Assembly: GCA_964247055.1 (NCBI GenBank)
Contig: OZ176053.1
Span: forward strand, 6,696,001 to 6,760,000
Source of the DNA: Paragordius varius
Lineage: Eukaryota; Animalia; Nematomorpha
Direction of reading: 5' to 3'
Length of the DNA stretch: 64,000 bases
The notes beneath the pieces were generated by a model that ran no database searches, was not told the DNA's origin, and saw nothing but the letters and a program-made list of their open reading frames with translations. How positions within the stretch are numbered: position 1 is the first letter of the stretch; every line of letters starts with the position of its first letter. Positions 29,924-64,000 of the stretch are shown in pieces. Both the position numbers and the translations under genes were made by a program.

Positions 29924-31309
29924 TTATTCATTTGCATTGGCATTCGAAACATTTGTGGCATATGTGGATTTCGTGAGTGATAAAATACTGCCTTTTCGCA
30001 CAATACCAAGCGTTTGTCGCAACGCATTACGAATATTTCGATCAAATGACATATATACATAAAAGTTTAGGGTATAAAAAGAAAGTTCCAAGAAGTCAGA
30101 AATACTGATGATAGAATCTTCTTCAATGGCCGCTGCGATTACAACTATGTTTGGAGTTTCTAGGAATAAATACATGGTGAAATAGATGAGGGCTGATATA
30201 TTTCGTGTATACATTTTGTTAGTTTTCTTTGGAGTGATTACAGTGCGATTCCTTTCAGTACTTAAGTTTGATGGGGTTAAATGTTTTGGACTATCATTTG
30301 CTTTTGGTTGATTTTGATTAAGATTTAGTGTGTTTCTGGTGCTTGATTGAGACATCTGTGGAAATGTTTTTCGCGTTGTTTTGCGCAGACTGTACCTCAA
30401 CAAATAAAATGTTATACCAGTACCAAATACTAAAATGCAAACCCCAGGAATGCCTGATAATATGACCATACGTGCAACATCGTATTTCTTTATCCATGGA
30501 ATATCCGTAAAAGTATTGTAATATCTGGTGGACACTGCAAATTTAAATGATTTATTCGTTGACATTACATCACAAAAGAGTGAAGCATTTAAACCGGTTG
30601 GATAAGATTTAATCATTTCTGACTTCGTGGGTTGTATAAATAGGCATTCATTAGTTTCATACCAAAAATAACTGCTAAAACTGGCACCAATTGATAAAAT
30701 AATGAAAAATGTACAGATTAGTATTAAAGGATTCAAACATGATGAAAAACTAGAGCGTGGGTTTAGCATACGCTGTATAAAATTGGTGTATCTCAGGGAG
30801 CTGTGTAGCAAGAAAAAACGGTCAGCCAGTAAAAGTGCCAACATAAAAATGGAGCCTGCAAAACACCCATTAAGTATTATAAGGACATATCGGCCCCTAA
30901 ATATCAACCAATTCCTATGAACAACTAAATCAACCCTTGTATACTTGCGTATATCATCGGCTAAAGTCATGGTTGCCATACAAATGGTTATGAGATTCAA
31001 GACCGCAATAATTTGTAAAAGTGTATAATATATCTTATTGTTGTTACTGATGTATGTGGTGCGAGAACTTGTATCAGAATTTCCACTTGCACCAGATGAT
31101 CTACCCCGTTTCATTTGTCGAATGAGATAAAGACCCATGAGATTGCCCACAGCACCGATAACTAAAAAAATGGGCGTTATAATAATGTACAAAATGACGG
31201 AATAGTCACGAAACGATGTAGCAGCCTTATCCCTATTACATAGGAGGGTGTCGTTTTCAATGTCATCTTTGCGACAAACATTTTGGTAAATTTCGTACAA
31301 TTTTGACAT
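29924..31309 (-). CDS. Intronless class A GPCR, orphan peptide-receptor type (FMRFamide/myosuppressin-receptor-like motifs)
   Basis: 461-aa ORF with 7 hydrophobic segments; TM1 GN, TM3 DRF, TM6 ETP, TM7 LNFYVY. Confidence 0.9.
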   Translation of the reverse strand: MSKLYEIYQNVCRKDDIENDTLLCNRDKAATSFRDYSVILYIIITPIFLVIGAVGNLMGLYLIRQMKRGRSSGASGNSDTSSRTTYISNNNKIYYTLLQIIAVLNLITICMATMTLADDIRKYTRVDLVVHRNWLIFRGRYVLIILNGCFAGSIFMLALLLADRFFLLHSSLRYTNFIQRMLNPRSSFSSCLNPLILICTFFIILSIGASFSSYFWYETNECLFIQPTKSEMIKSYPTGLNASLFCDVMSTNKSFKFAVSTRYYNTFTDIPWIKKYDVARMVILSGIPGVCILVFGTGITFYLLRYSLRKTTRKTFPQMSQSSTRNTLNLNQNQPKANDSPKHLTPSNLSTERNRTVITPKKTNKMYTRNISALIYFTMYLFLETPNIVVIAAAIEEDSIISISDFLELSFYTLNFYVYMSFDRNIRNALRQTLGIVRKGSILSLTKSTYATNVSNANANE

Positions 31310-35257: not shown

Positions 35258-37558
35258 ATGCGGACACCCATATACCGTGCCTATAAGAATTTAAGATGGG
35301 TTAGGCGACGTTTAATTTGGGAACCATGGAAGGGCAAAGTTGTATCAGCTATAAGCAATTTGGGGATTGGAGTAGGCACAGTAGGGCCCATTGATAAGAA
35401 ATATCCCAACATACGCTTTGTTACATGCACAAAAATGATATTAGATGACTTTTTGAAAATGGTATTCTATTTTATTAAGTTTTAGTATTTTGATGAAAAA
35501 GAAGTTTTAAGTGTATATGATCCATCAAGTTTAGCAGAGGAAGGCGATACAGTACTTATTAAAAAATTAGACAAACCCTATTCCAAAGACGTTCATTTCA
35601 CGTTAGCTGATGTTGTATATAAGGTATATTTTATTGTCTTTTGTATAAGTGAATACCTCAGATTACAATAAATTTAGATATTTTATTTATATATGTAACA
35701 CCCAAAGGCCATTTTAGAGATTGAAGTTTAGCACAAAATCATAAATATTGGATAAAAATCTCATCTCAAACTTTTTGTCAATTATCTTTATAAGTTTTTT
35801 GAAAAAAAAACACAAATAGGCAAATAGTATATCATTAGAATTGGGTGATTTATGACGGCATTTTATAACAAATTAACGTGCAATTTTTGAGTTCATAAGA
35901 AATGTTCTGGTTTTTAATCCTGTACACGTCAAAATTCGTAGGCAAAGCTTGTAATGACACAAAAACTGACAGAATACATAATATTTCGCAACGCTTTCCT
36001 AAATATAACTCTAGATACTTTTATATACTACAGCCACGTTAGTACAGCTGAAGGATGAAAAATGCCATAAAATCGCTCAAATAAGGAAAGATATCTGTTA
36101 ATAAATTTAGTAAATCACAAATCAATGATTACAACCATATTAAAATTTACTCTACGACAATACGGCCAGCCCCTGGCGTGCCGCTGACTGAAACTAATAA
36201 ATATACAACCTACCATGAAGACAAAATTAAAACAATCCCCTTTGCTTTAAATCAACCACATATATTTTTTTGACCATACTTTTTGTTTGATATAGATTCA
36301 ATTGATCATATCATCCAAGCATGTGAGGTGGCTAGGTCATAACACACCAACAAAAATATCTTAATGAAATACATATTTTCCGATTGAAAATCAAGGATTT
36401 AATTGTGTTATTTAAGCCATACGAATCCTTTAAAAGAGTTACCACTTTTGTAGTAATTGAAAATCGCAAAATTTGCGCACATTATGATCAATTGAACGCA
36501 AAATGCCCTATTCTAAAAAATATAATTAAAAATACTATTTTGCGGAGCCTGAACTCAATTTGAAATGCAAAGATTTGCGATAAAATATGTTTATATGTGG
36601 TAGATTATGACATGAAAAAATATTTTTGAAAAATTTATCAAAATTATAATAATATGAATTATATGGTATATTAAAGCATGGTAAAATCGCTATAAAACAC
36701 TTCAAGACATTATAATATTATTTATATAATTCGGTGACGAACATTTCTATCATTTGACGTTTTTAAAACATTTGTGCCTCTCCAAATTTAAGTATATTTT
36801 TTGAAACATTTTACATGTAAGACGAAAATCAAAATTTGGAAGTAATTGATATGTATTATCAAATTATACAGAATAAGTTTATTTTATCGATTATTTATTA
36901 CATTCTTTATATGACCTAACTATCGCAATCTTAAATATGCTATTAGTTTTAATTTGTGGGCCTTTCTATCCTATATTTCAGTATATTATCTTTTATATGA
37001 GGCTTTGAACATTTTATAAATTTATTTTTAGGATATATTTTAGCATATATTTAATTGGTTAAATTTGTCTCAACCATGGCCCTTTAAAATATTTCTGCAG
37101 CCCGCGAGAAGTTTTAATTCAAAATTTTACGTAATCTAAATGAAATAGATTTTCTTAAGCAAATTTTTTCGAATTTTGGCAATGACGCGAAAATTGTTAG
37201 AATAAATAGTTGTTTTTACAGCTTTATATTTATTTTAAAATAATGCGTCCCATGAAGCCATTTGTGTTGGACATCCTTGTTCCGGAAATTAAAAAAATAT
37301 TGACGAGTTGATTTTGAATATAAAAAATAATTCAATGATGTTTATTAGATTGGTAATATTGTGGACCCAATAACAGGACGAAGAATATTAGGGACGGAAT
37401 TTAGTGACGATATTGACGATGTTAAGCGTGTCCATGAATTTATGAGGAAAACGCATGAACCTGAAATGTTGAACGAAAACTCATTCAAAGATCCACAAAA
37501 CTATAATTATGTCTGTGATATTTACGAAAGAACTAGGGATAACTTTTCTAAATACTAA
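35258..37558 (+). CDS. MRPS17: Mitochondrial ribosomal protein S17 (uS17m), 183 aa, 3 exons
   Basis: Exons 35258-35461, 35486-35623 and 37349-37558 give LDDFLKMYF…EGDTVLIKKL…HFTLADVVYKIGNIVDPITGR, the uS17m pattern. Start codon less certain. Confidence 0.88.
37061..37279. mobile_element. Degraded hAT-type MITE
   Basis: GCAGCCCGCGA and right end GTTGGACATCCTTG. Confidence 0.55.
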
Positions 37559-38463: not shown

Positions 38464-41400
38464 TTAAAAAGCATATCGCGTCCTTATATCCTCCAATTTT
38501 TTGGATACTTCATTTGGCGTCCGATCTAATTCTTCAGCTATACTCCTTTGTTTGGCATAATCCAAGGCATTAAATTGTTCACATAAATCTCCATCTACGA
38601 TATTTTTTACAGGGAAATAATAGGAACGGAAAGAAAGATGGTCCCGACCCACTAAACTAATGTTTTCGGCTCGCATATGCATTTCAAGATGCTGGAAAAA
38701 ATCGTAATCTTCGTGCGAAGTAAAGGGGAGAAGTAAACCGATTGTACCTAAATGTACGCGCAATATTATTGCCTTATAAAATCATTTTATTTAAATTGTG
38801 ACAAATCAGATTTTCATGAATAAAACTTTAATATATTTCCAATATAATTTTGTATCGTCAAGTGTAAATAAACATTTTTAAAACATTTATGAATAATCTA
38901 AAAGCCATTAATCTCCTATGAATACATGAATTAAGAAATATCATATCTTTTTGTCCATCATATAATTTAAAATATATAAATAACAATTATAAATAAAAAC
39001 TACGATGAAAAAAAACTCTTACCCGATAACGTTGTATAAAGGAGACATTCAAACCCCCCGGGAACAAGGGTAGCTTTTTGCAGTGAAGTTATCGTTTCTC
39101 CCACGTAAAAATGGGCAATCTCTTGGGCTTTTTGTCCAAACAAACCAATCCTATCCCATATAGATCTATTACCGGCTGGATCTTCGTCCGTTAAATTGTC
39201 ATTTATGTTTTGAGGGAGTCTAACAACCGCAAAATTTCCAAATTTATCAGCCAATGCTACAGTGTTGTAATCGAGTAAAAGGGAGGTGTTATTCCACCAA
39301 GGTATAGTCATGTCAGCAAAAGCAACTAATGTATTTTCACGAGATCTAAAACAATAATATGGTATATGTTTTCTAGGTAAAATTACAGGTATATATTTGA
39401 TATCCTGCATAATGATTAATTGAATTGGTATTTTAATATATTATAACAATATACTAATAATACTAATTTGTAATTTATCGCATTCCAAATAATCTAATTA
39501 TATACAGTGTCTTCCCTCAGTGATGCCACAATATTGGCATTATAATCTTTTTTCAGATTAATTAAAATTGTATTATAGAATTCTAATATAATTTTATAAA
39601 TATAATTAAAAAGAGTCCATTGCATTTGTTTAAGTTTATTTGAATAAAATATAATGATAAGAAAAGGTCAATAATATAATTACGAATTTGTCAAATTACC
39701 TATAACGCAAAAAGTGTATTCCATGTTGAATGTCTGCTACAAAAACACGAGATCCAAGTGTTTCGATTTTAACTACGGTAGTAGGGATGGATTTGTTTTC
39801 ACATTTTCGCAACAATTTTCGTCGACCAAGTTCATAAATACGAATATACCTCCCAACACCCACTAAAATGCGTCCCTAATTTAGGAAATAATAATAGTTT
39901 AATAATGTAAGCCAAATTTTGCGGCCCAAAACAAACCATAATCAAAAAGCAGTATATATGGTATTAACAAAAAATGGAACAAAAAGTTTGCCTCATATTT
40001 CTCAAATTGGCTGAAAAAAAATTTAAAAACTTCATACATATACTCTATTTTTTAAAAAATGTCAAACTATGAGAAAACCTCTAATATAAACCAATTTATA
40101 CCCAAAAATTCTGATACATTTATTTAGATACCATATCATTTATTAAGCGTAAGTTAACCTGAAACGGCGTTATAACTGAAGGAATATCCTCCACCATAGT
40201 TTTGTGCAAGAAATCTAGCTTGGCTTCGCGCCATAAAAATGTGTACAGGAAACCGCCAGTGTTTTCCTTGCTTATGAGATTGAAATCACGCACTACTCCA
40301 ACCACCAAATAGAGTTCGTGAGGGGAACGATTCGAAAACCGAACGCCGCAAAGAGAAACAGCTGATTCGTTTTGTGGAAGGGGAACGACCGTGCCTTCTT
40401 GTTCTGCAACGGAAACTCCAGCCTCCCCACTCACTGAAAGACCAGTAAGTCCGGCAGATCGTGCAGGTAGGACCTAGGCAAAAGGTTAATTTGATAATAT
40501 AAATGTTTTTATTTCATTAGAAACTTTGAACTTAATAAACCACAGTGTCTCTTTAATAAGCTAAAAAGTTGAATGAGTCACATTATGTGAATATTCAATT
40601 TTTTATATAGTCATTCTTAGACACCATATGCTAAAATTTATTGCATAACATCAAATTTACTATGATATAAATTATAATTCAATCTCTTTCACCACGACAT
40701 TTTAAATTTGCCAATATATGTTGGGAAACTTGTTTTAGCTTAAATTAACATTGGATAGATGTATTACCCTAATTTGCGAGGCCCACATAGCGGTACCCGC
40801 TTTAGGAGACCCAAAAAGTGCTTCCGGAAGTTCTTCGTTCAAAAAAGCAGCCGCCATTTCAGCAGCCAACTCTTTTTCGTTTTGAGCGGCTGATCGGACC
40901 ATCTCTTCAGCCATTTGCTGGCGACGGATGCGTTGACTTTCAGCCGTGTAAGCATTGTGCTCCGATTCGATTAAAGCCAGAGTACCGGATTCGTGATTCA
41001 CGACAAAACGTCGAGGGGTATATCTGAGAGCAAAAATAAAAAAAGGAAATTGTAAAATAATAAAGATAAAAAATCAATTGTGTTCAAAAAACCTTTTTAT
41101 ATCAATAAATAAAAAAATAATAAATTGGGAGATATGAGGAACATAAAATATGTTTAATCCCATAACGTTTGGTCGTTATACGTTATATATAAAATATATA
41201 ATTAGTTTTATTTTAAAATGACTTTTATTATTAATTTGCTGATATTTGCATCATATATTGAAATAAAACCTTATATTAAACACCCATTTATTTTGAAAAG
41301 TGGTAAAAATGATTAAGTATTTAGTATCCAAAAATAATACCCATAAAAATTGGATAATTATGTATTTCTTGTTGTTCAAAACTAACTAATGGGTTAAAAT

Positions 41401-43684
41401 CCACTAAACTTTAAAAAGATATAATGACCACCTCACTGATTAATAATAATATACAGTTTACAGTCTCTTTTTTCCTTTTTTATTTAAGGGAGGACTTAAA
41501 TTGTATCCTGACATGTGAAGGCTTTTAACACTCGCTTGCCAAGGGCTGACAGCGATGATGGAAAAATTGCGTAGTTTAGGATTCAAACTCTGGCACGCAG
41601 TGTGAGAGTCCGGCTCCCTACCTAAAACCCTTTATATCAAGATCAAACTTTCTATTCTATAATACAACTATGACCAAAAACCAATTGATAATTAACTCAT
41701 ATATATATATATATATATAGGATACCTTAATGGCAAGGGTGTAATGTTAAAAACAGCGCCCAATTTTTCCAAAGCCAGGATTCGCAAGGTGTTTGTGCTG
41801 ATTGCAACAATGCCCTCGGGACATTGTTCGCTAGCGAAAGAAGCTGCAAACATGAGTTGATTTGAAATGGGAACGGGGGGAGCAGAACCAGTCGTCCCTG
41901 GTGCTACACTTGAATCCTATTGTATGTTGGGGGAAAAATAGTAAAAGGTGGTAATCAATATATTTGTCATACGTTGAGTAAATACCTCAGGTGACAATAA
42001 CCAAAATATTGGCGTTATGACTCATTATTAATGAAAAATTAAAAAAAAATATAAAATATATAATATATATGAGACATAAATTTTAAAATTATTTACGTGA
42101 TTAGATATAATAAATGATTTTGGTTCATTATAATAGTAAAACATCCACTTATTAGTTTTTAATGCGCATAATAAAAGGTCGGAAAGTGATAATAATTTGT
42201 TTTTAAATGCTGTTTATTAAAAGCTTGAGCATACGAACAAAAAATGTGCAGACGCTATATTTCATTAATATTAAAAAAATTTTGTGAACATTTTATAAAC
42301 AATATAATACCTGTATACTCAGTGGTGTGAGATGGAATCGACTTTCATATCCATAACTTAACCATGTGCGACTCGAAATGGCTAAAACGGCATGCGTGCC
42401 TTGCAACCGAACAGGGAAAAGCTTGACAGCTCGGGAACCCAAATAACGTGTTCGAGTATCCGATAAATCACCAGTAATTTCATCCAAAGATGTTCTAAGG
42501 AGTACACCATTCGCCAACCCTAAAATTATTTAATAATATGGTATAAAGATTCTTATTAGACATATTATAGATTAAGCCGTCGTAAAAAAATTTTGACAAA
42601 AAAACTTAAAACATATGAAATTATTAAGAAGGTATCCCAATTTAAAATTCATGCATGTTTTGACAGAGCCCCTCATCAAAGGCCAAAAAGCAAACAAAGC
42701 AATTTACATCCATAAATGATTTCATAATAAGGCTATAAAAGTGTTAAATAATTAGATTGCTAGCTCCTTTCGTCGTCATAATTTATAGGGCAAAACAAAC
42801 ATTTTAGCATAACCAATCCAAATTTTGGAATATCGATTCCCCATATTATAATATAAAGAAAGCCTTACCAATGTTCAAAAAGTATCCAGTGGGTGGGGCC
42901 AAATGCTTAGCGGTTGCTAATCCTTCCGCCTCAATTTCCGTTTTTGCGGATGGACCTTCGGCTCCTTTATCTGGTCCAGAGCTGACGTTTGCATTAGTTT
43001 CAGTTCCACTTGTACCAGTTTCATTTATGCATAACGATTCAGGTATAGCAGGCAAGGCCTGCATACTCAAAGGACTCAGGCAAGTTAATGGATCAAGACT
43101 TATGATACGTACAGTGTTATCGGCCAAACCGACCGCTAAAAATTTACTCCTTTGTTCTCCGGGTCTGACCATACCCAAACTCATGCAAAGGACGGGAGAT
43201 GGTAGTTCCTTACGTTCCGTGTATTCATTCAATTGTCCTGACTAGGAAAAAACAGACAGGACTTAAAATTATGTAAAAGATTGGGGTATAAACAATCGAT
43301 AGTGTTGCATAGTTAGAGTGGGATTGTTTAAATGCAAGCAAGTATTATGATTGATTTCCATGGATCAAAAATTTCAAAAAATAATGATTTGATGCTAATA
43401 TTATGTCGATTGAAAATCATAATGCCTGAAATTTATTACAAAAGGCCATTAAGCAATCAAAATATATTTCAAATTACCGCATCCATTTCAAAGTAGACAA
43501 TCTCATTCCCTGTTAAAGCTATAACGACTTGTCGATTATTAACAGCACACTTGATAATATGTTTGCGTTGCGGAGCTTTCCATTCATTAACACGTTTATC
43601 GACACGTATATGCCGAATACCTTCCGGATAAATCTAGGTATGTGATTAAATAGAAAATAATGCACTAAATTATCCCAAATATAC

Positions 43685-43759
<75 letters not shown>

Positions 43760-46700
43760 GAAAGTAGCTTTATGATCAATGATCTTTTTTTAAAACAGTT
43801 TTTAATAAAAAAAATTATTTAAGTAGTGTTTAGCTTGAGTTTTATAATTTTGTTAAATTCATAGCCTATTATGCTGCACAAGATATTTAAAGGTCAAAAA
43901 CGAGGGAGTTAAGAATATATTCGATAAATATTACTATGGTCTCAAGAACTGATACAATAAAGATTATTGGCATAAAAATCAATCAATATATATTATGGAT
44001 TGGATTATTACTTGAATAAGGGCATCTGTCCCTAACTGTGAGCAAGCCAAAGTTTGTGTTGTTCCAAGGAATCCAGAATCAGTCACTTCTTCAACCGTTT
44101 CCCCAATCGAAAGAACAAGTGTGGCGTTAACGAAAGAAACCACAATGTAGGAATCAAAACCGTCTACACGCAAGAAAATTTACAAAAACTTTGAAAAAAG
44201 GTTCTGTTTAAAACTTGATTATGTGAATTTTTTAATAAACCTTTTACTTTATAGTGGATTTTGCCTTTTTTTCAAAAAAATTACAAACTTTATTTTAAAT
44301 TAATAAATTTTGCATATTGTATTACTCGTGATGTGTAAAAATACCCTTTACTTAAAATCGATCAATATAGAGAAATCAATCGTGCCATATTAATATAACC
44401 CTAATTTGTCAAAGTTATAAATATTATCGTCATTGGATAATAAAATATAAGACAGAACAATATACCATCAAATTTTTTCTTTACTGTCCATACAGCAGTT
44501 GGATTACCAGGGAGTTCGGACACAGCCATTTCCGTTACCTAATTATGTAAAAAGTATAATCAGATGCTAAAAAATCAAAATTTTAATAAATAAACCTCTT
44601 TAGTAAGAGTAATCATTGAAATTATATATATATATATATATGAAAAAGATACTAACTTCTAATCCGTGTCGTAGAATTTTGAGCGTAGATCGAGAACCAC
44701 GTCCACAAGCCGCATAAAGTTGAGGTGTATCTTCATTCAGCAAATCGGTAACCTAGATAAAATGTATTTTTTTAATTTATATAAATATTTTCATATGATG
44801 GTACGCATATTATAAATTTTTTGGAACTAACACTTAATCAAACGAAATAAATATTATGATTATATTCTAGAAACTTTATAGTTAAAATATTATTTGAACA
44901 ACCGTTCATGTAACCAGCATCACATTTAACAGGTGAATGTTAATTTTGTATGAAAAAAAACATAAAATATCAAAAAAAATGAATAAAATTAAAATCAAAA
45001 CTTTACCAATCACACACAATATAGCGGCGATAATTAACTCAATAAATGTGATGCGTAATGATAACAACATACATACTTGACAATGCAATATAGGCCTCAA
45101 ACTATCAAGTTCATCCACCAAAACCAAATTTTTCAGTCCTCGAGGTGCATAAAAGAATGTGTCGCCCTCCTCCAAAGGCATAGCACTACTGAATTCGGGC
45201 TCATCATCATTATCGCCGAGATGTGCGATTTGATACAGATAACTATTGGCGTTGTTAGAAAATAATTATACATAATATAAAATTCGCCGACTTTTTAATT
45301 TGCGACTTTTTTTAAAAAAAGGTGGGTGGAATATAGTTTATTTTATATAAGCATTGCAATTTTATAAAATACAAGATTGCTAACTTTATAAAGATTGCTA
45401 AATTTAAATTTAATTTTATCTACGGAAAACATTCGTTAGATTATATTATGCGAACTTTTTAATTTCTGACTTTTTTAAAAAAAAAGAAAAATTTTTTTCA
45501 AAAAGATTTGATTAAGAGTACAATTTTTAAATAGAAGGAATAAAGTTTATTTTATATAAGCATTATATTAGAATTTAATTATAATTTTGAATTATAATAA
45601 AAATACAAAGATTGCTGACTTTAAATTTGATTTTATCAACAGAAAACATTTATTAAATTATATTGGTTAAAATATACTATTAGATACTAAAGATGGTATA
45701 AAAAACTATTTTCAAAATTTTTCATTTGTTTAAAATAAACCAAATGATACAGAAAAAAAAGTTGAAAAAAATACTGATTTCCGAATTCTGAGGCGACAAA
45801 AAGAAACCCAGTTTTTAGTACGCACATAGATACAGCCGGACATGGAAGAGTGTCCAAATATTTGAGTCTAATTTCAGAAACTATTCCTTCATCTTCGACG
45901 CCAGTAACCCCATCAGATTTTTTCGTAATAGTCGTAACTTTAAAAATGTCTCCTTGTTCATTTTGAACGAGAATGAAAAAAAGGTTCTGCCAAAAATATT
46001 CAAGATATATATTATGGCGTAAAACTCAGCATTTTTTATGATAATTAAAGGCGTAAACAAATTAATTTTGATAAAAACAATATCAATAATACTTACTAAG
46101 AGAAAAGCTCATAAGTTATTTTAAGAGGATCCCTAAAAACATAATTTTAAGTAAAAAAGTCACGTTATTAGATAAAACATTTAAAGTAATTATTTCATAA
46201 AAAATATATTTTCTATAATTTCCATTCCCAGTAAACCGAGGCCATCTCCTATTAAAGGAACGTTTAATAGCGCTTATAAAATAATTGGCTCTAATCATTT
46301 TCCTATTTTTGGATAAGACACTAGTTTTTAAGTTATGATCGTTTGAAGCGTGGGTAAAAACCTCATAATGAGCCAAAAAAGAAATAAAAAATCAAAATTG
46401 AGTCATTCTCTATCATACGTTAAAAATATCTGGTGAATATTATAATTCAAAAGCTCCATACATGATTCCCAAAGATAAAATAAAGTTAACAAACGAACCA
46501 TGTATTATTAATAAATAAAAAATGTATTAATACGACTATATTTTGATCAAAATTAGTGTGATCTTGTAATAACAATTATTATTTTCAGTTAATAGGACTT
46601 TTTAAGTTAAGTATCCACTGTATATAAGTTAAATATAAAACGCAAACTTTCGTTTTATGCATAGCAGAACAGACAAAAAGAGCACCCCTGTCAGGATCAT

Positions 46701-48908
46701 CTAAATCGTTTCGGCGTCTGGGAATGGGAAATCTAACATCCGGTTGATCGCCCAAATTTTTGTAGACGACATAGTTTTCACAACACACTAATAAGCCGCC
46801 TGGTCCTTCATTACCACCAGGCACTAATAAAAAATAAGATAAGTATATACTATGAAAAAAATTTAAAATGTAAAATAGTAAAATGCATATAATTTAATAA
46901 ACCAAATTTTTAAAAGTTAAAAAAACTAGAAAGAACGAAGCAAGTTAGTTGTCTTTTGTGTATATTTACATTAATATAACTCGTATAATAACCCAATTTA
47001 ACATAACCCTCTAATAAAAAAATTTGCATAACACATTTGTTTCATTTGTTAAGTGGATAAAATATTAGATATTTTAATAACAAATCATATAGACAAAATA
47101 TAGAGTCATATTAATCATATTGATAAACAAATGCCAACATTGATCACAAAAGAAAAATGAATATATTATATCTTTGCACAAATATCACTATTTAATACAA
47201 GGCTAAAAGGCTGAGAATAATAAACTTTCAATTTGCTGTAATCTTTCATGTTATTTATTTTCAAAACTTAAGCTATATGAAAAAATTTAGCAATCAATTA
47301 ACATCTTCATGATATATTTATATATAGTATGAAAAATAAATATTTGATTAGTGTATCAAAATTAATGCCTTTCAATATCAAATATATACGGTATTATAAT
47401 TAATAACCAAGAGGCCATAAATATGACTTCTTGATATATCTTAGGTCATTTAAATTAAAAAAATATATTAAAACTCCCTGTCATATACCTTTTTATTTAT
47501 AGTATTTTTTCTCATAAAAAATAGTTTTCCATTTAGGAGAATGAAAACTAATAGATGTATTGCACACTCCTAATATTACAGAATAAAAGATTTGAATAGG
47601 GTACAAGTAATACCTGAAATAAGTAAATTTCCAGGTTCATCCATATTTTCAGCAAATTTTCTCACAACATGATTCAATCCCAAATCCAATTCGTAATATG
47701 TTAATGTTTGTTGGGAAATTTTAACAGCTTTACCTGTTGTATCGTGATCTGCTTCCTTTATGGAAAAAAACAAAAAAATACGTAATGAATTGGCATTTGG
47801 ATATAAAACTTTTTTCAATAATTTCAAAATAAATAAAAATATTCATGGATTTATTTGGATACTGCGGTTTATAACTTAGTCATCACATAATATTTAAATC
47901 AATTAACAAAATATAGTAGTTAAAAATAAATTCTAAACATTTATTAATCATCCAGTTCATAATGTCTTTATTAAGCGGTAAAATCTTTACAAACATGTAA
48001 TAAAAGTTGTTTTTCAAAATTTACTTTATTTCAAAATATATCTTATTTTGCAAATATGGGGAGCACATTTAAAAAATAAAAAATGATAAAAAAAATGCCT
48101 TTATTACAAATAAGCAACGCAAATTATAATTATATTGATAAAAAAAAATTTTTGAAATCATATTTAAATAAAAAAATATATACTTCATAATCTAATTCGA
48201 GACAAGCAAACATGGGATTCTCAAAACCAACGTCAATACCCGTTATGCTATAACAAATATTAAATGATTTATGGGCTTCAAGAGGTGACGAAATGGTTAA
48301 ATTAGCTTGAGCATCTCGATTCAGAATATAAACAAATTTTTGTTTTTCAATGGCACCTAAAATATAGCGATTGTAACACGAATAGTAAATTTTTAACTAT
48401 GACATTAAATATAAAAAACAGCCCTTTTTTATTAAAATAACACATTTAAAGCCTTATCTTATATTACTGTAAAAAACAATTTTCCTTACCAATCATAATC
48501 GCTCGTCCTCTGGGGTCAATTGCCAAATATTGACCAGGAACGATTCTTCGACAACCAGTTTTTCCAAAACACTCGCTATGGACCTTTTCAAATATATTTT
48601 TGCCAGGTTTGTATTCCAATATTACAATACGGCCAGAATCACTTCCAACAACCAAGTAATCTAAGCATTAAAGAATTAATACCTTTAGTGCCGCCTGTTA
48701 ATCGAAAAGGACTAAGAGATCTTATGATACCAAATACCTCAGTACTTATTAAAGTGTGCAATTTTCCAGTATTTAAATCGGGTTTTAGTAATTCCAAAAT
48801 TTGACCCCTACTTACAGCTATTTCCTGTTGCTTACTTCCAGAAAAATTCCCATGAACGGCAACAGTTATGCCAGTAGCTTTTTGCAATGTGAGATTGTAC
48901 AAATGCAT
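38464..48908 (-). CDS. SF3B3: Splicing factor 3B subunit 3 (SAP130), 19 exons, 1295 aa
   Basis: Exons 48908-48683, 48660-48490, 48356-48184, 47755-47614, 46823-46648, 45986-45775, 45242-45077, 44752-44657, 44538-44466, 44163-44012, 43633-43478, 43241-42869, 42519-42311, 41916-41726, 41023-40750, 40473-40159, 39875-39700, 39345-39023, 38747-38464. All GT-AG, phases close (3888 nt); MHLYNLTLQ start, [11 protein letters not shown] end. Confidence 0.97.
41462..41623 (-). mobile_element. tRNA-derived SINE copy in SF3B3 intron 14
   Basis: Reverse-complement homologue of 52043-52222. Confidence 0.75.
43690..43757. repeat. (TA)n microsatellite
   Basis: Pure dinucleotide run next to an SF3B3 acceptor; many shorter runs elsewhere. 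Confidence 0.95.
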
Positions 48909-61009: not shown

Positions 61010-61973
61010 ATGACGACAACGGAATCTGTGATACCGATTAGTATGTTAAACACACCTAATCGTATCGATATAACAACGACATTAAGTCAAAGAGCAAATG
61101 CTTTTTCCATAGATTCACTTATTGGACGTCCCGTAATTAATGACATGACTAAGGAATCATCAGATAAAGCTTCTCAGATTTCAAATTTTTCCAATCATAA
61201 TAAAAACAGTCACGATAGTAAGAATACGAGTGTGAAATTTCCTAATCCTCTTATCCCAACAATGAATTCTTTCATGCGAGGCGCGGGGGAACGATCCCAA
61301 AATATTCCGAATTTGGCTGCCTTTTCACCCTTTTATCCAACGCAACGAATTCCATGTTTTTACCCAATATCATCGGGTTCTTCTATGTCAACGAATAATG
61401 TCCTATATGCTAGACAACATTGGAATAATCTTTTGAATCTTTATTACTTCAATAATCTGACAAACGGTGGAAACCAACCGGCACCAATTTTTAGGGATGT
61501 ATACCCTGAAGCATGTATGACCCCTAACAGTAAAAGTGTTTCACATAATTCTGCGAAAGCGTTATTAAACAGCAAGCAGCCAATACTAAATAATGAATCA
61601 TTCATCAACACATGTAATGATGTAAACAATAAATCTGGTTGTTTTTATGATTATCATAAAAAGGAAAATTCAAATTTGATGGATTGTTCGGTAATAAATC
61701 CAAAAGTTAAAATGCCAGTATCTAACTTGGTTGTTTTATCTGGTATTCGGCCACCATTCCATACATCCTCTAATGATGATAAATTGGTAACACCCCACAC
61801 AACAAAGGTCAAAGAACATAAAAAACCAAAAATTAAAATTGATAAAACACATGAGAATGATACAATTAAAAACAAATTATTTGGGAGAAAAAGACGAAAA
61901 AATATTTCAGATAATTCCCCAAACACGTCGAATGACCAGCTCAAATGTCCATCAAAACAATTAAATATAAAAG
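61010..61973 (+). CDS. First coding exon of a probable T-box factor (Tbx20 or Tbx15/18/22 type); T-box domain not in the window
   Basis: N-terminal LSQRANAFSIDSLIG matches the LSSRANAFSIAALM / LSSRAHAFSVEALIG eh1-containing motif; low-complexity linker; donor G|GTATTA at 61974. Confidence 0.6.
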
Positions 61974-64000
61974 GTATTATTCGTATTATATAAAATCGAG
62001 ATCTGTAAGAAAGTCAACTTCAATATTTGATCTTTAATGGGTCTTTATTGCAAAAGCGTTTGATATTTTTTTTAACCTAGTATTTGTAATTATACCTTAA
62101 TCTATCGAAAAAATTGATTTAATTTTTTTTGTGATGTAATTTGTTAAATCGCAGAAAATATTAGTTTAAAAATATATCTATAGTACTCAAATGTTGCTAG
62201 AATGAGAGATAGAATGAGTGAGTGTTAAAATGATAAACATTAAATTTTTGCGGGAGAATTATATTATATAATTTTATACGTTAAGATATATAATATATTT
62301 TACTTAAAGCTAGCTAGCAATTATCCAATTTATTTAAATTGAAATTCAGCTAATGCATTTTCACATACACATACATACACACATATTTCATCTCCATTTC
62401 ATTTAATTTGTTAAAATGTTTTTTTTTGTAGTAATTTTGATACAAAAAAGCTTTTAACCAAAACATCTTTGTTCATAAGACTTCTTAAAGAGTTTTGCAG
62501 ATGTCAGAGAATATGCTTGCAAATTATTTAATGTTAAATTTTTAAATATCCTGAAAAATAGATATAAATGATGTGTAGAAAATTTTAAAAATGTGCGAAA
62601 ATATATCGTAATACTTCTACCGCTTTTAGTAAATAGTAAATAGATATATTGGTTAAAAGTGATCCTAAATTGGTGAATAGATGAAAAATGGAATATAGTA
62701 AATTTTTTGATGTGTATGATTAAAAATAACTAACATTTTTTCTTGATTCACCAATAAAATGACTCTTATAAACCATATTCTGTCTGTTGACTTGAGATAA
62801 AGAAAACGAATATTTTTTATACATTAAGTTTCCATATAAATTATGACATATAAATATATATATTTATTTAATAACATGCAAAAAATTTGGAGTTTATTCC
62901 TTGTTATTGCTTCATCAAAAAAATACCAGATAATATTTTTAATACTAACTGAGTTAGTTACAATATGTATAAAAACGAAAAATAAAAAATACGGTATAAT
63001 GGTATTTGATTGAATATTGAACATATGCGTTGATTAAGTGAACACTAAAGTGAATTCATCATTTTTACAATATTATAAATTTTAAACAAAATATTTAACA
63101 CAAAATCCAATAATATATAGATAATTGATTTCCTCCCTTCTTATATTGCTTGAGAATTGACATTGACTTGACAAATCAGTTAAAATATTTTTACAGCATA
63201 AGTTAAATGAAGATTATTGATAGATATGATAATGTATAATTGAAAGTTTAAGGTTTAATATTTGGAAAAAGTATTAAATATATTTCAATAAAGTATCTGG
63301 AGTATCCAAATCTATCTGTTAAATACTTTGACTGAGTCAAAATAAATAAGTTAGAATTTTTATTTCGTAATGGAAAACAAGTAGCCTTACACGAACAAGA
63401 TTAGTAATTTCTATTATTCAGTTATTTTTATTTTTTTGATATTTTTAATCAACATTTTAACCCAATGTTTGAAAAATATATTAAAAGTTAATAGGAAAAA
63501 AATATTTCTTTTAAATAGTTACGGCCTCAATCTTTCTTTTCTAAATATTCTGTCTTACTGTTAAACCGAATTTGAAGTAATACAATAAAAACATGGTGTG
63601 ATTTTAAAAGTCTATCTTAAAATTCAGAAAATCTTATTAAATTTTGGTAGTTAGATTGGATTTTGAGTAATCCCTATACAATACACCACTCATCAACAAA
63701 TCATCAATTAAAAATATTTCATTTCACTTATCAGTTGTGCTGGATCTCCAAAATATTACTCAATATTCTTTCTGCCTTGTATTTTTGCTTTTATTTTTCA
63801 CAAATCAATACTTAAAAACATATATAATTGATGCTTAAATCAAAATTCATTAAAAAGATAACCTATTATCATATGGAGTTGATTATTACGACTTATGGGG
63901 CAAATTTTAACTCTAAAATTAATCTATGAGGCATATACTCCTTGACAAATGCAAACTTTTTTTGTAAAATTTTTAATTTATTATCTGAATTACTTTTTGT

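Follow-up and report, generated by a model that had tools for sequence, protein, structure and literature searches.

A 64,000-nucleotide (nt) stretch of the genome of the hairworm Paragordius varius (assembly GCA_964247055.1, contig OZ176053.1, positions 6,696,001 to 6,760,000; hereafter the window, to which positions refer unless a contig or locus is named) carries on its minus strand a gene for the splicing factor subunit SF3B3, and the first intron of this gene appears to be only 22 nt long. From the sequence we consider the segment 48661-48682 (minus strand, phase 1) to be a real U2-type GT-AG spliceosomal intron that would be spliced out of the transcript, and we put the probability of this reading at about 0.85. 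The donor is AAG/GTATTA and the acceptor GCTTAG/AT, the slash marking the proposed splice junction. An intron of this size had been proposed here in an earlier reading of the same DNA made from its letters alone (the sequence-only reading), and its coordinates, both of its ends and its uniqueness were verified: the 22-mer, the reverse complement of 48661-48682, occurs once in the window and consists of GTATTA, ten bases and GCTTAG.

The evidence that carries this interpretation lies at the junction itself. Exon 1 (48683-48908, minus strand) starts with the ATG at 48908 and runs for 75 codons to 48684, ending in FRLTGGTK, and is followed by the G at 48683, which is base 1 of a split Asp codon. 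Exon 2 (48490-48660, minus strand) supplies the AT that finishes this codon; its first bases on the minus strand, from 48660, are AT, TAC TTG GTT GTT GGA AGT GAT TCT GGC, and it ends in AIMI and the G at the donor of intron 2. Cutting exactly 22 nt joins ...RLTGGTK to exon 2 with the split codon G/AT read as Asp, whereas reading on without removal runs into a stop after 89 codons. An exhaustive search of representative proteins gave five full-length relatives (P0181, P0201, P0203, P0215 and P0252), which were aligned to the window by tblastn; with all five, residue 75/76 falls at 48684 and the alignment resumes with the following residue from 48661 on, in a different frame. For each junction of the gene every frame-compatible, stop-free GT-AG pair was scored against three of these five references, and the 22-nt pair was the top-scoring solution with all three. 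The Pfam profile PF10433 (RSE1/DDB1/CPSF1 first propeller) is likewise continuous across the join: exon 1 covers profile positions 2-61 and exon 2 positions 64-120, the interval between 61 and 64 being taken up by the K and the split D. The earlier claim that the segment bridges a frameshift and that its removal restores the protein exactly is thus borne out by the five references and by the profile, which run on across the join.

The composition of the segment is also that of an intron. Its GC content is 0.23, compared with a mean of 0.41 for the exons of the gene and 0.17-0.31 for its other introns, and the segment shares the donor hexamer GTATTA with intron 4 (790 nt) of this gene.

The complete gene (38464-48908, minus strand) comprises 19 exons and 18 introns, with a coding sequence of 3,669 nt, or 1,222 codons and a stop. 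The five reference proteins gave 19 ordered tblastn blocks, with residue 1 at 48908 and the C-terminus and stop at 38464. Exon-by-exon tracking of the phase found all 19 exons in phase and no internal stop in the coding sequence. The model was searched exon by exon, and two-exon joins were computed only for the scoring of junctions. Introns 1 to 9 measure 22, 133, 428, 790, 661, 532, 324, 118 and 302 nt, and introns 10 to 18 measure 378, 236, 436 (or 496), 457, 702, 345 (or 327), 283, 354 and 275 nt. The remaining 17 introns therefore span 118-790 nt, in agreement with the earlier statement that all of them exceed 100 nt. The nearest of them, intron 2 (48357-48489, minus strand, 133 nt, phase 1), is an ordinary-sized neighbour of the micro-intron, and fragments from other species break at the corresponding point (...AVMIG in P0123). 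Two junctions leave a choice of donor. Exon 12 (42956-43241, minus strand) ends in a lineage-specific, low-complexity stretch of about 20-40 residues rich in T, S, G, E and A, in which in-frame donors are possible at 43015 and at 42955, giving an intron 12 of 496 or 436 nt, with the references split between them. A comparable choice exists at intron 15 (327 or 345 nt). The coding variant that takes the alternative donors of introns 12 and 15 would be 3,627 nt long.

By sequence similarity the host gene is SF3B3/Rse1: its closest named relative is SF3B3 and neither DDB1 nor CPSF1. Exon 1 corresponds to residues 1-75 of the SF3B3 chains in PDB (E 3e-33) and is 73-82% identical to fragments from other animals named 'splicing factor 3B subunit 3'. 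In addition to PF10433 in exons 1 and 2, the gene has a match to PF03178 (CPSF_A) in its last two exons. A search of the whole assembly (110.56 Mb, 44 contigs) with exon 1 and P0181 as queries found matches only at C4:6734476-6744908. The gene is thus a single locus, with no back-up copy of a core protein of the U2 small nuclear ribonucleoprotein (snRNP), and it must therefore work.

The intron sits at a position that is shared with other organisms. Several hundred N-terminal fragments of SF3B3 from other organisms came out of word searches, many of them predicted from genomic contigs with introns ignored, and those that reach the boundary were classified by what follows the K. The boundary reads K-D-Y, unbroken, in 144 fragments; in 158 it reads K, then G, then unrelated sequence; and in nine it reads K, G and an in-frame insert of 19-62 residues before D-Y-(I/L)-V-(V/I)-G-S-D resumes. 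The G after K is constant because a phase-1 donor, G/GT, is read as Gly. These K-G fragments and in-frame inserts therefore indicate that many eukaryotes share an intron at precisely this codon and in this phase, and the shortest one visible through the inserts is about 57 nt long. Judging from such read-through protein fragments, the intron position in P. varius is homologous to that of introns in orthologous genes, and the 22-nt segment is best seen, on the same sequence comparison, as the ancestral intron of this site in a shrunken form. One of the references, P0201 (a predicted SF3B3 of 1,204 amino acids from another species), does not have the residues that match the start of exon 2 and reads ...AGASKGARRVVPGQY; judged from the sequence, this gap at the intron 1 site looks like an error of the gene model in the annotation of that species.

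Within its 22 nt the intron holds two TTAAT motifs that fit the branch consensus yUnAy. The second of them (48667-48671, minus strand) is the candidate branch motif, with the candidate A at intron base 15 (window position 48668), 14 nt after the first intron base and 7 nt before the last (position -8). TTAAT is thus a putative branch site, proposed on the strength of its match to the consensus and its location. The genome encodes U1 and U2 small nuclear RNAs (snRNAs) of canonical type. The best U1 snRNA copy scores 124 bits and starts with the canonical ACTTACCTG, and in the best U2 snRNA copy, at 178 bits, the branch-pairing GTGTAGTA is present. A U12-type intron was considered as well and rejected: the donor is GTATTAAT and not (A/G)TATCCTT, and the branch site TCCTTAAC is absent.

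We propose that an ancient SF3B3 intron has shrunk to about the minimum length found in this genome, 21-22 nt, and that recognition would probably take place across the intron. U1 would pair with AAG/GTATTA and U2 with the TTAAT branch-like motif, and the TAG acceptor would then be used directly after the branch region, with no real polypyrimidine tract between the two. Removal of the 22 nt from RNA, the identity of the branch A and the mode of recognition are what we infer from the sequence.

Both snRNA families are present in multiple copies. U2 snRNA has 46 matches in the assembly, 35 of them above the Rfam cut-off, ranging from 178 down to about 47 bits and clustered in a few regions (C3:250000-530000, C2:11950000-11990000 and C5:12727000-12788000); this family, or pseudogene field, is unusually large and diverged for a 110-Mb genome. 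U1 snRNA has 13 matches, graded from 124 to 31 bits, on both strands within about 70 kb (C6:565000-634000).

The SF3B3 intron is not alone in the genome. We found 14 further GT-AG introns of 21-31 nt, one in MRPS17 and 13 in seven small-GTPase genes. For the latter, the whole assembly was searched with the Pfam Ras profile, adjacent exon matches that follow on from one another in profile coordinates were taken, and intron length was estimated by adding three times the overlap in the profile to the gap in the genome. The 36 introns of this sample fall, by their estimated lengths, into 11 of 19-31 nt, eight of 46-86 nt and 17 of 251-3,214 nt, with none of 87-250 nt. The micro-intron share is accordingly 11/36, or 13/38 if two 21-nt introns that emerged from the reading of locus L007 are counted. 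Eleven Ras-family loci were taken out for the reading of junctions, in which all frame-compatible GT-AG pairs were listed and the Pfam coordinates were checked for each exon. Ranking of the GTPase junctions by the expected length of the profile proved misleading, as matches of the hidden Markov model spill into intron sequence and Rho carries an insert. For six of these micro-introns the Ras coordinates of the flanking exons confirmed the junction by their contiguity (47 and 48, 65 and 68, 65 and 68, 52 and 54, 72 and 74, and 129 and 130).

The individual cases in the GTPase family, given in coordinates of the loci taken out, are one of 23 nt in a RhoA-like gene (L006:583-605), one of 25 nt in a Rab11-like gene (L004:429-453), one of 26 nt in a Rab1-like gene (L005:304-329), and three of 29, 28 and 23 nt in a further Rab gene (L008:611-639, 522-549 and 286-308). 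Single micro-introns of 25 and 31 nt are found in two other small-GTPase genes (L009:301-325 and L010:2030-2060), the second of which also holds a 1.4-kb intron. The remaining gene has five, of 21, 21, 22, 22 and 22 nt (L007:235-255, 312-332, 395-416, 490-511 and 631-652). These five successive introns of 21-22 nt lie within about 620 nt of one Rab-like gene (L007:164-781, plus strand; C5:5361114-5361730), and the one at L007:312-332 (21 nt) is in frame and free of stops, so that it could equally be a 7-residue loop insertion. The MRPS17 micro-intron lies in the window (35462-35485, plus strand, 24 nt); it starts with GTATTC and finishes with TTTTAG, TTAAG being placed 8 nt from the end, and the in-frame reading through it ends in a TAG stop. 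The exon downstream of it matches positions 28-67 of Pfam Ribosomal_S17 (E 2e-5, 25.0 bits, just below the cut-off of 25.9), and the upstream exon has no Pfam match.

The ends of the 15 micro-introns, that of SF3B3 included, resemble one another. At the first four positions of the 5' end the counts are G15, T15, A11 and T12. Towards the 3' end A outnumbers the other bases at -9 and -7 and is often found at -8 as well, T is dominant at -5 and -3, and AG is present in all. The SF3B3 intron fits this pattern, and its length places it at the lower edge of the class, 21-22 nt. Tiny introns are not the dominant class in the genes sampled. They account for one of the 18 introns of SF3B3, and in about 30 adjacent exon pairs of protein-kinase matches inspected by eye, a patchy survey to be read only qualitatively, none were closer than about 35 nt. 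Micro-introns are therefore a minority class, with a share that varies by gene. The sequence-only reading had also held that this animal splices micro-introns alongside introns of several kilobases. At the level of sequence this holds for the genome, with introns of 1.4-3.2 kb present in the small-GTPase family, but not for SF3B3 itself, the longest intron of which is 790 nt.

Several observations weigh against the 22-nt segment being a spliced intron. The distance of 14 nt from the 5' splice site to the branch is far under that usual in animals. Between the candidate branch A and the AG there is no polypyrimidine tract, only TGCTT, and the T-rich TTCTTT lies upstream. No protein or transcript product of the same species was found in the protein collections by word and exhaustive searches, the best identity being 89%. 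The unspliced 89-residue open reading frame had a best identity of 82% in a word search (hits of 49-155 amino acids), a word search with region 1-133 of P0123 (hits of 101-322 amino acids) found nothing closer than 80-86% to either exon, and the exhaustive representative search with exon 1 found no protein of the same species. A word search with the 134-residue exon of the RhoA-like gene, which should have caught a full-length product across the 23-nt intron, gave 89% at best. From these null searches the species is evidently not in the collections within the length ranges searched. Finally, the interval is known from the assembled sequence alone, which leaves room for a single-site assembly error.

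Such an error, either a spurious insertion of 22 nt or the collapse of a longer intron, had been raised by the sequence-only reading, and an interval read only from an assembly would be open to it. However, an artefact is unlikely to bear GT...AG ends, which are found in 0.17% of the 22-mers in the window (0.015% for GTA...TAG), or to hit the exact ancestral phase-1 site; moreover, 14 other cases cluster at 21-31 nt with the same end motifs, and the assembly has contigs of 13-15 Mb. We therefore regard an artefact as highly improbable. Slightly less probable still is that the true intron is a 52-nt GT-AG interval, 48712-48661, in which the 30 nt before the 22-mer would also be intronic. Apart from the 22-nt pair, no GT-AG pair at the junction but this one is in frame and free of stops, and introns of 46-86 nt are present in the genome. 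It would, however, delete ten residues in the frame of exon 1 that match all other species, among them the near-invariant FRLTGG; it scores about 60 lower with all three scoring references, and it costs PF10433 positions that exon 1 now covers.

Two further explanations accept the interval as it stands and differ in what becomes of it. Removal by an agent other than the spliceosome could take the form of a somatic excision of DNA, like that of the internal eliminated sequences of ciliates, of translational bypassing, or of an XBP1-like cut of the RNA. The agent is predicted here from genomic sequence, and to that extent such a removal would fit. Against it, the boundaries are G/GT...AG/A and not TA-TA, and moving the excision by one base, the only equivalent choice, gives GG...TA; other species have ordinary spliceosomal introns of at least 57 nt at the homologous site; and the donor hexamer is shared with the 790-nt intron 4, while U1 and U2 are canonical. 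A ciliate-type internal eliminated sequence in particular was rejected, since TA is not found at both boundaries, and we find the non-spliceosomal alternatives as a group very hard to credit. The faintest chance of all attaches to a dying or pseudogenised copy of SF3B3 with a frameshifting insertion, the working copy being missing from the assembly. The frame is indeed broken unless the 22 nt are removed, but the coding sequence of 3,669 nt keeps its phase through 19 intact exons and has no internal stop, it shares high identity with other animals, and a second locus is absent from the 110.6 Mb; the same 'defect' would also need to have struck the RhoA-, Rab11- and Rab1-like genes.

As a spliceosomal intron, the 22-nt segment belongs to a kind that is known from elsewhere. 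In a survey that covered 51 genomes of animals (PMC13644364; Mol Biol Evol, September 2026), introns shorter than 30 bp were confined to Myxobolidae and Dicyema japonicum, and further lineages with such introns are expected there. The lineages listed for introns of this size by the sequence-only reading (ciliates, chlorarachniophyte nucleomorphs, microsporidia and dicyemids) were thus incomplete, the myxobolid myxozoans having been left out (PMC13644364). The introns described here are like those of the myxobolids (Henneguya, Thelohanellus and Myxobolus) and of D. japonicum, which have medians of 22-27 nt, in being GT-AG introns of less than 30 nt in an animal, at conserved positions between conserved exons (PMC13644364). 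In both, a few A's stand upstream of the AG (they are taken as the branch site there), there is almost no pyrimidine tract, and U2 is canonical (PMC13644364). The difference lies in the setting: most introns of the myxobolids and the dicyemid are tiny and their genomes compact, whereas here tiny introns are a minority beside introns of 0.1-3.2 kb in a repeat-rich genome. The splice motifs here, GTAT and TAG, are also fuller, the myxobolids and the dicyemid having a bare GTa and a bare AG, and the lineage is ecdysozoan and is not listed in the main text of that survey (PMC13644364).

Ciliates have introns of similar size (about 25 nt in Paramecium and 15-16 nt in Stentor), which are likewise GT-AG, are handled by a canonical spliceosome and usually give a premature stop when retained (PMC5014332, PMC13644364). 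Unlike the present case, however, they have essentially only tiny introns, and they are protists with different genetic codes and nuclear organisation. The ultra-short introns of human (<66 nt; PMC4463651) are comparable in being rare and in coexisting with kilobase introns in one genome, but they are about twice as long or more, and none are near 22 nt (PMC4463651). A further likeness is with parasitic flatworms, where intron lengths are multimodal with a discrete short class, of 36-50 nt, in a parasitic animal (PMC4040987). In full-text searches, the scope of which did not extend to the main genome paper on hairworms or to the PMC13644364 supplements, no literature connecting short introns with Nematomorpha was found. 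An ultra-short U2-type intron is thus known as a kind, and in this lineage it appears to be unreported. The short intron mode of the parasitic flatworms is reportedly above 30 nt. With somewhat more confidence than doubt, we would regard Nematomorpha as a third independent animal lineage with introns of less than 30 nt, kept as a discrete minority beside introns of 50-90 nt and of kilobases in a repeat-rich, non-compact genome, with one spliceosome handling 21 nt and 3 kb within single genes.

Some features of the genome at large may be recorded here. The GC content of the window is about 27%; that of the Gordionus genome is 26.93%, with a BUSCO score of 71.6% (10.1101/2023.06.26.546503). Hairworm genomes so far are 200-300 Mb in size, and the assembly used here, with 110.6 Mb in 44 contigs, is much smaller than those given for the other hairworms (10.1101/2024.06.11.598342). 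Two long open frames in the window, at 29924-31309 (minus strand, 461 amino acids) and 61010-61993 (plus strand, 327 amino acids), have no Pfam match at E 0.01. Contig C44 is mitochondrial, with a COX1 match at E 5e-122 in which TGA is read as sense. It contains two palindromes without a spacer, one of 262 bp with arms that are 95% complementary and one of 194 bp (99%), and these lie inside the ND1 and ATP6 reading frames as read with the invertebrate mitochondrial code. Long inverted repeats within mitochondrial protein genes are described as peculiar to Nematomorpha (PMC6649704), and the two palindromes thus lend independent support to a hairworm as the source. Just upstream of COX1 there is also a tandem array (L002:691-1479; C44:6670-7458) of about ten 72-bp units, each with a perfect hairpin of 49-52 nt, which under the bacterial code gives a repetitive open reading frame of 262 amino acids.

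Introns of this size have a bearing on how hairworm genes are found and counted. Annotation pipelines that forbid such short introns would truncate or miss genes, and the unspliced SF3B3 reading, for example, stops after 89 codons. Hairworms have reportedly undergone widespread gene loss, and broken gene models could inflate such reported 'loss' of universal genes and might contribute to the low BUSCO scores obtained for hairworms. It is pure speculation that, SF3B3 being a subunit of the U2 snRNP and retention of its micro-intron leading to a stop, the intron couples splicing capacity to SF3B3 output. The animals previously known to bear introns of less than 30 bp are highly reduced parasites with compact genomes (PMC13644364). 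If the 22-nt segment and its companions of 21-31 nt are spliced, an ecdysozoan with a repeat-rich genome would join them, genome compaction would not be required for the extreme shortening of introns, and one and the same spliceosome of an animal would cope both with introns of kilobase length and with only about 14 nt between 5' splice site and branch.

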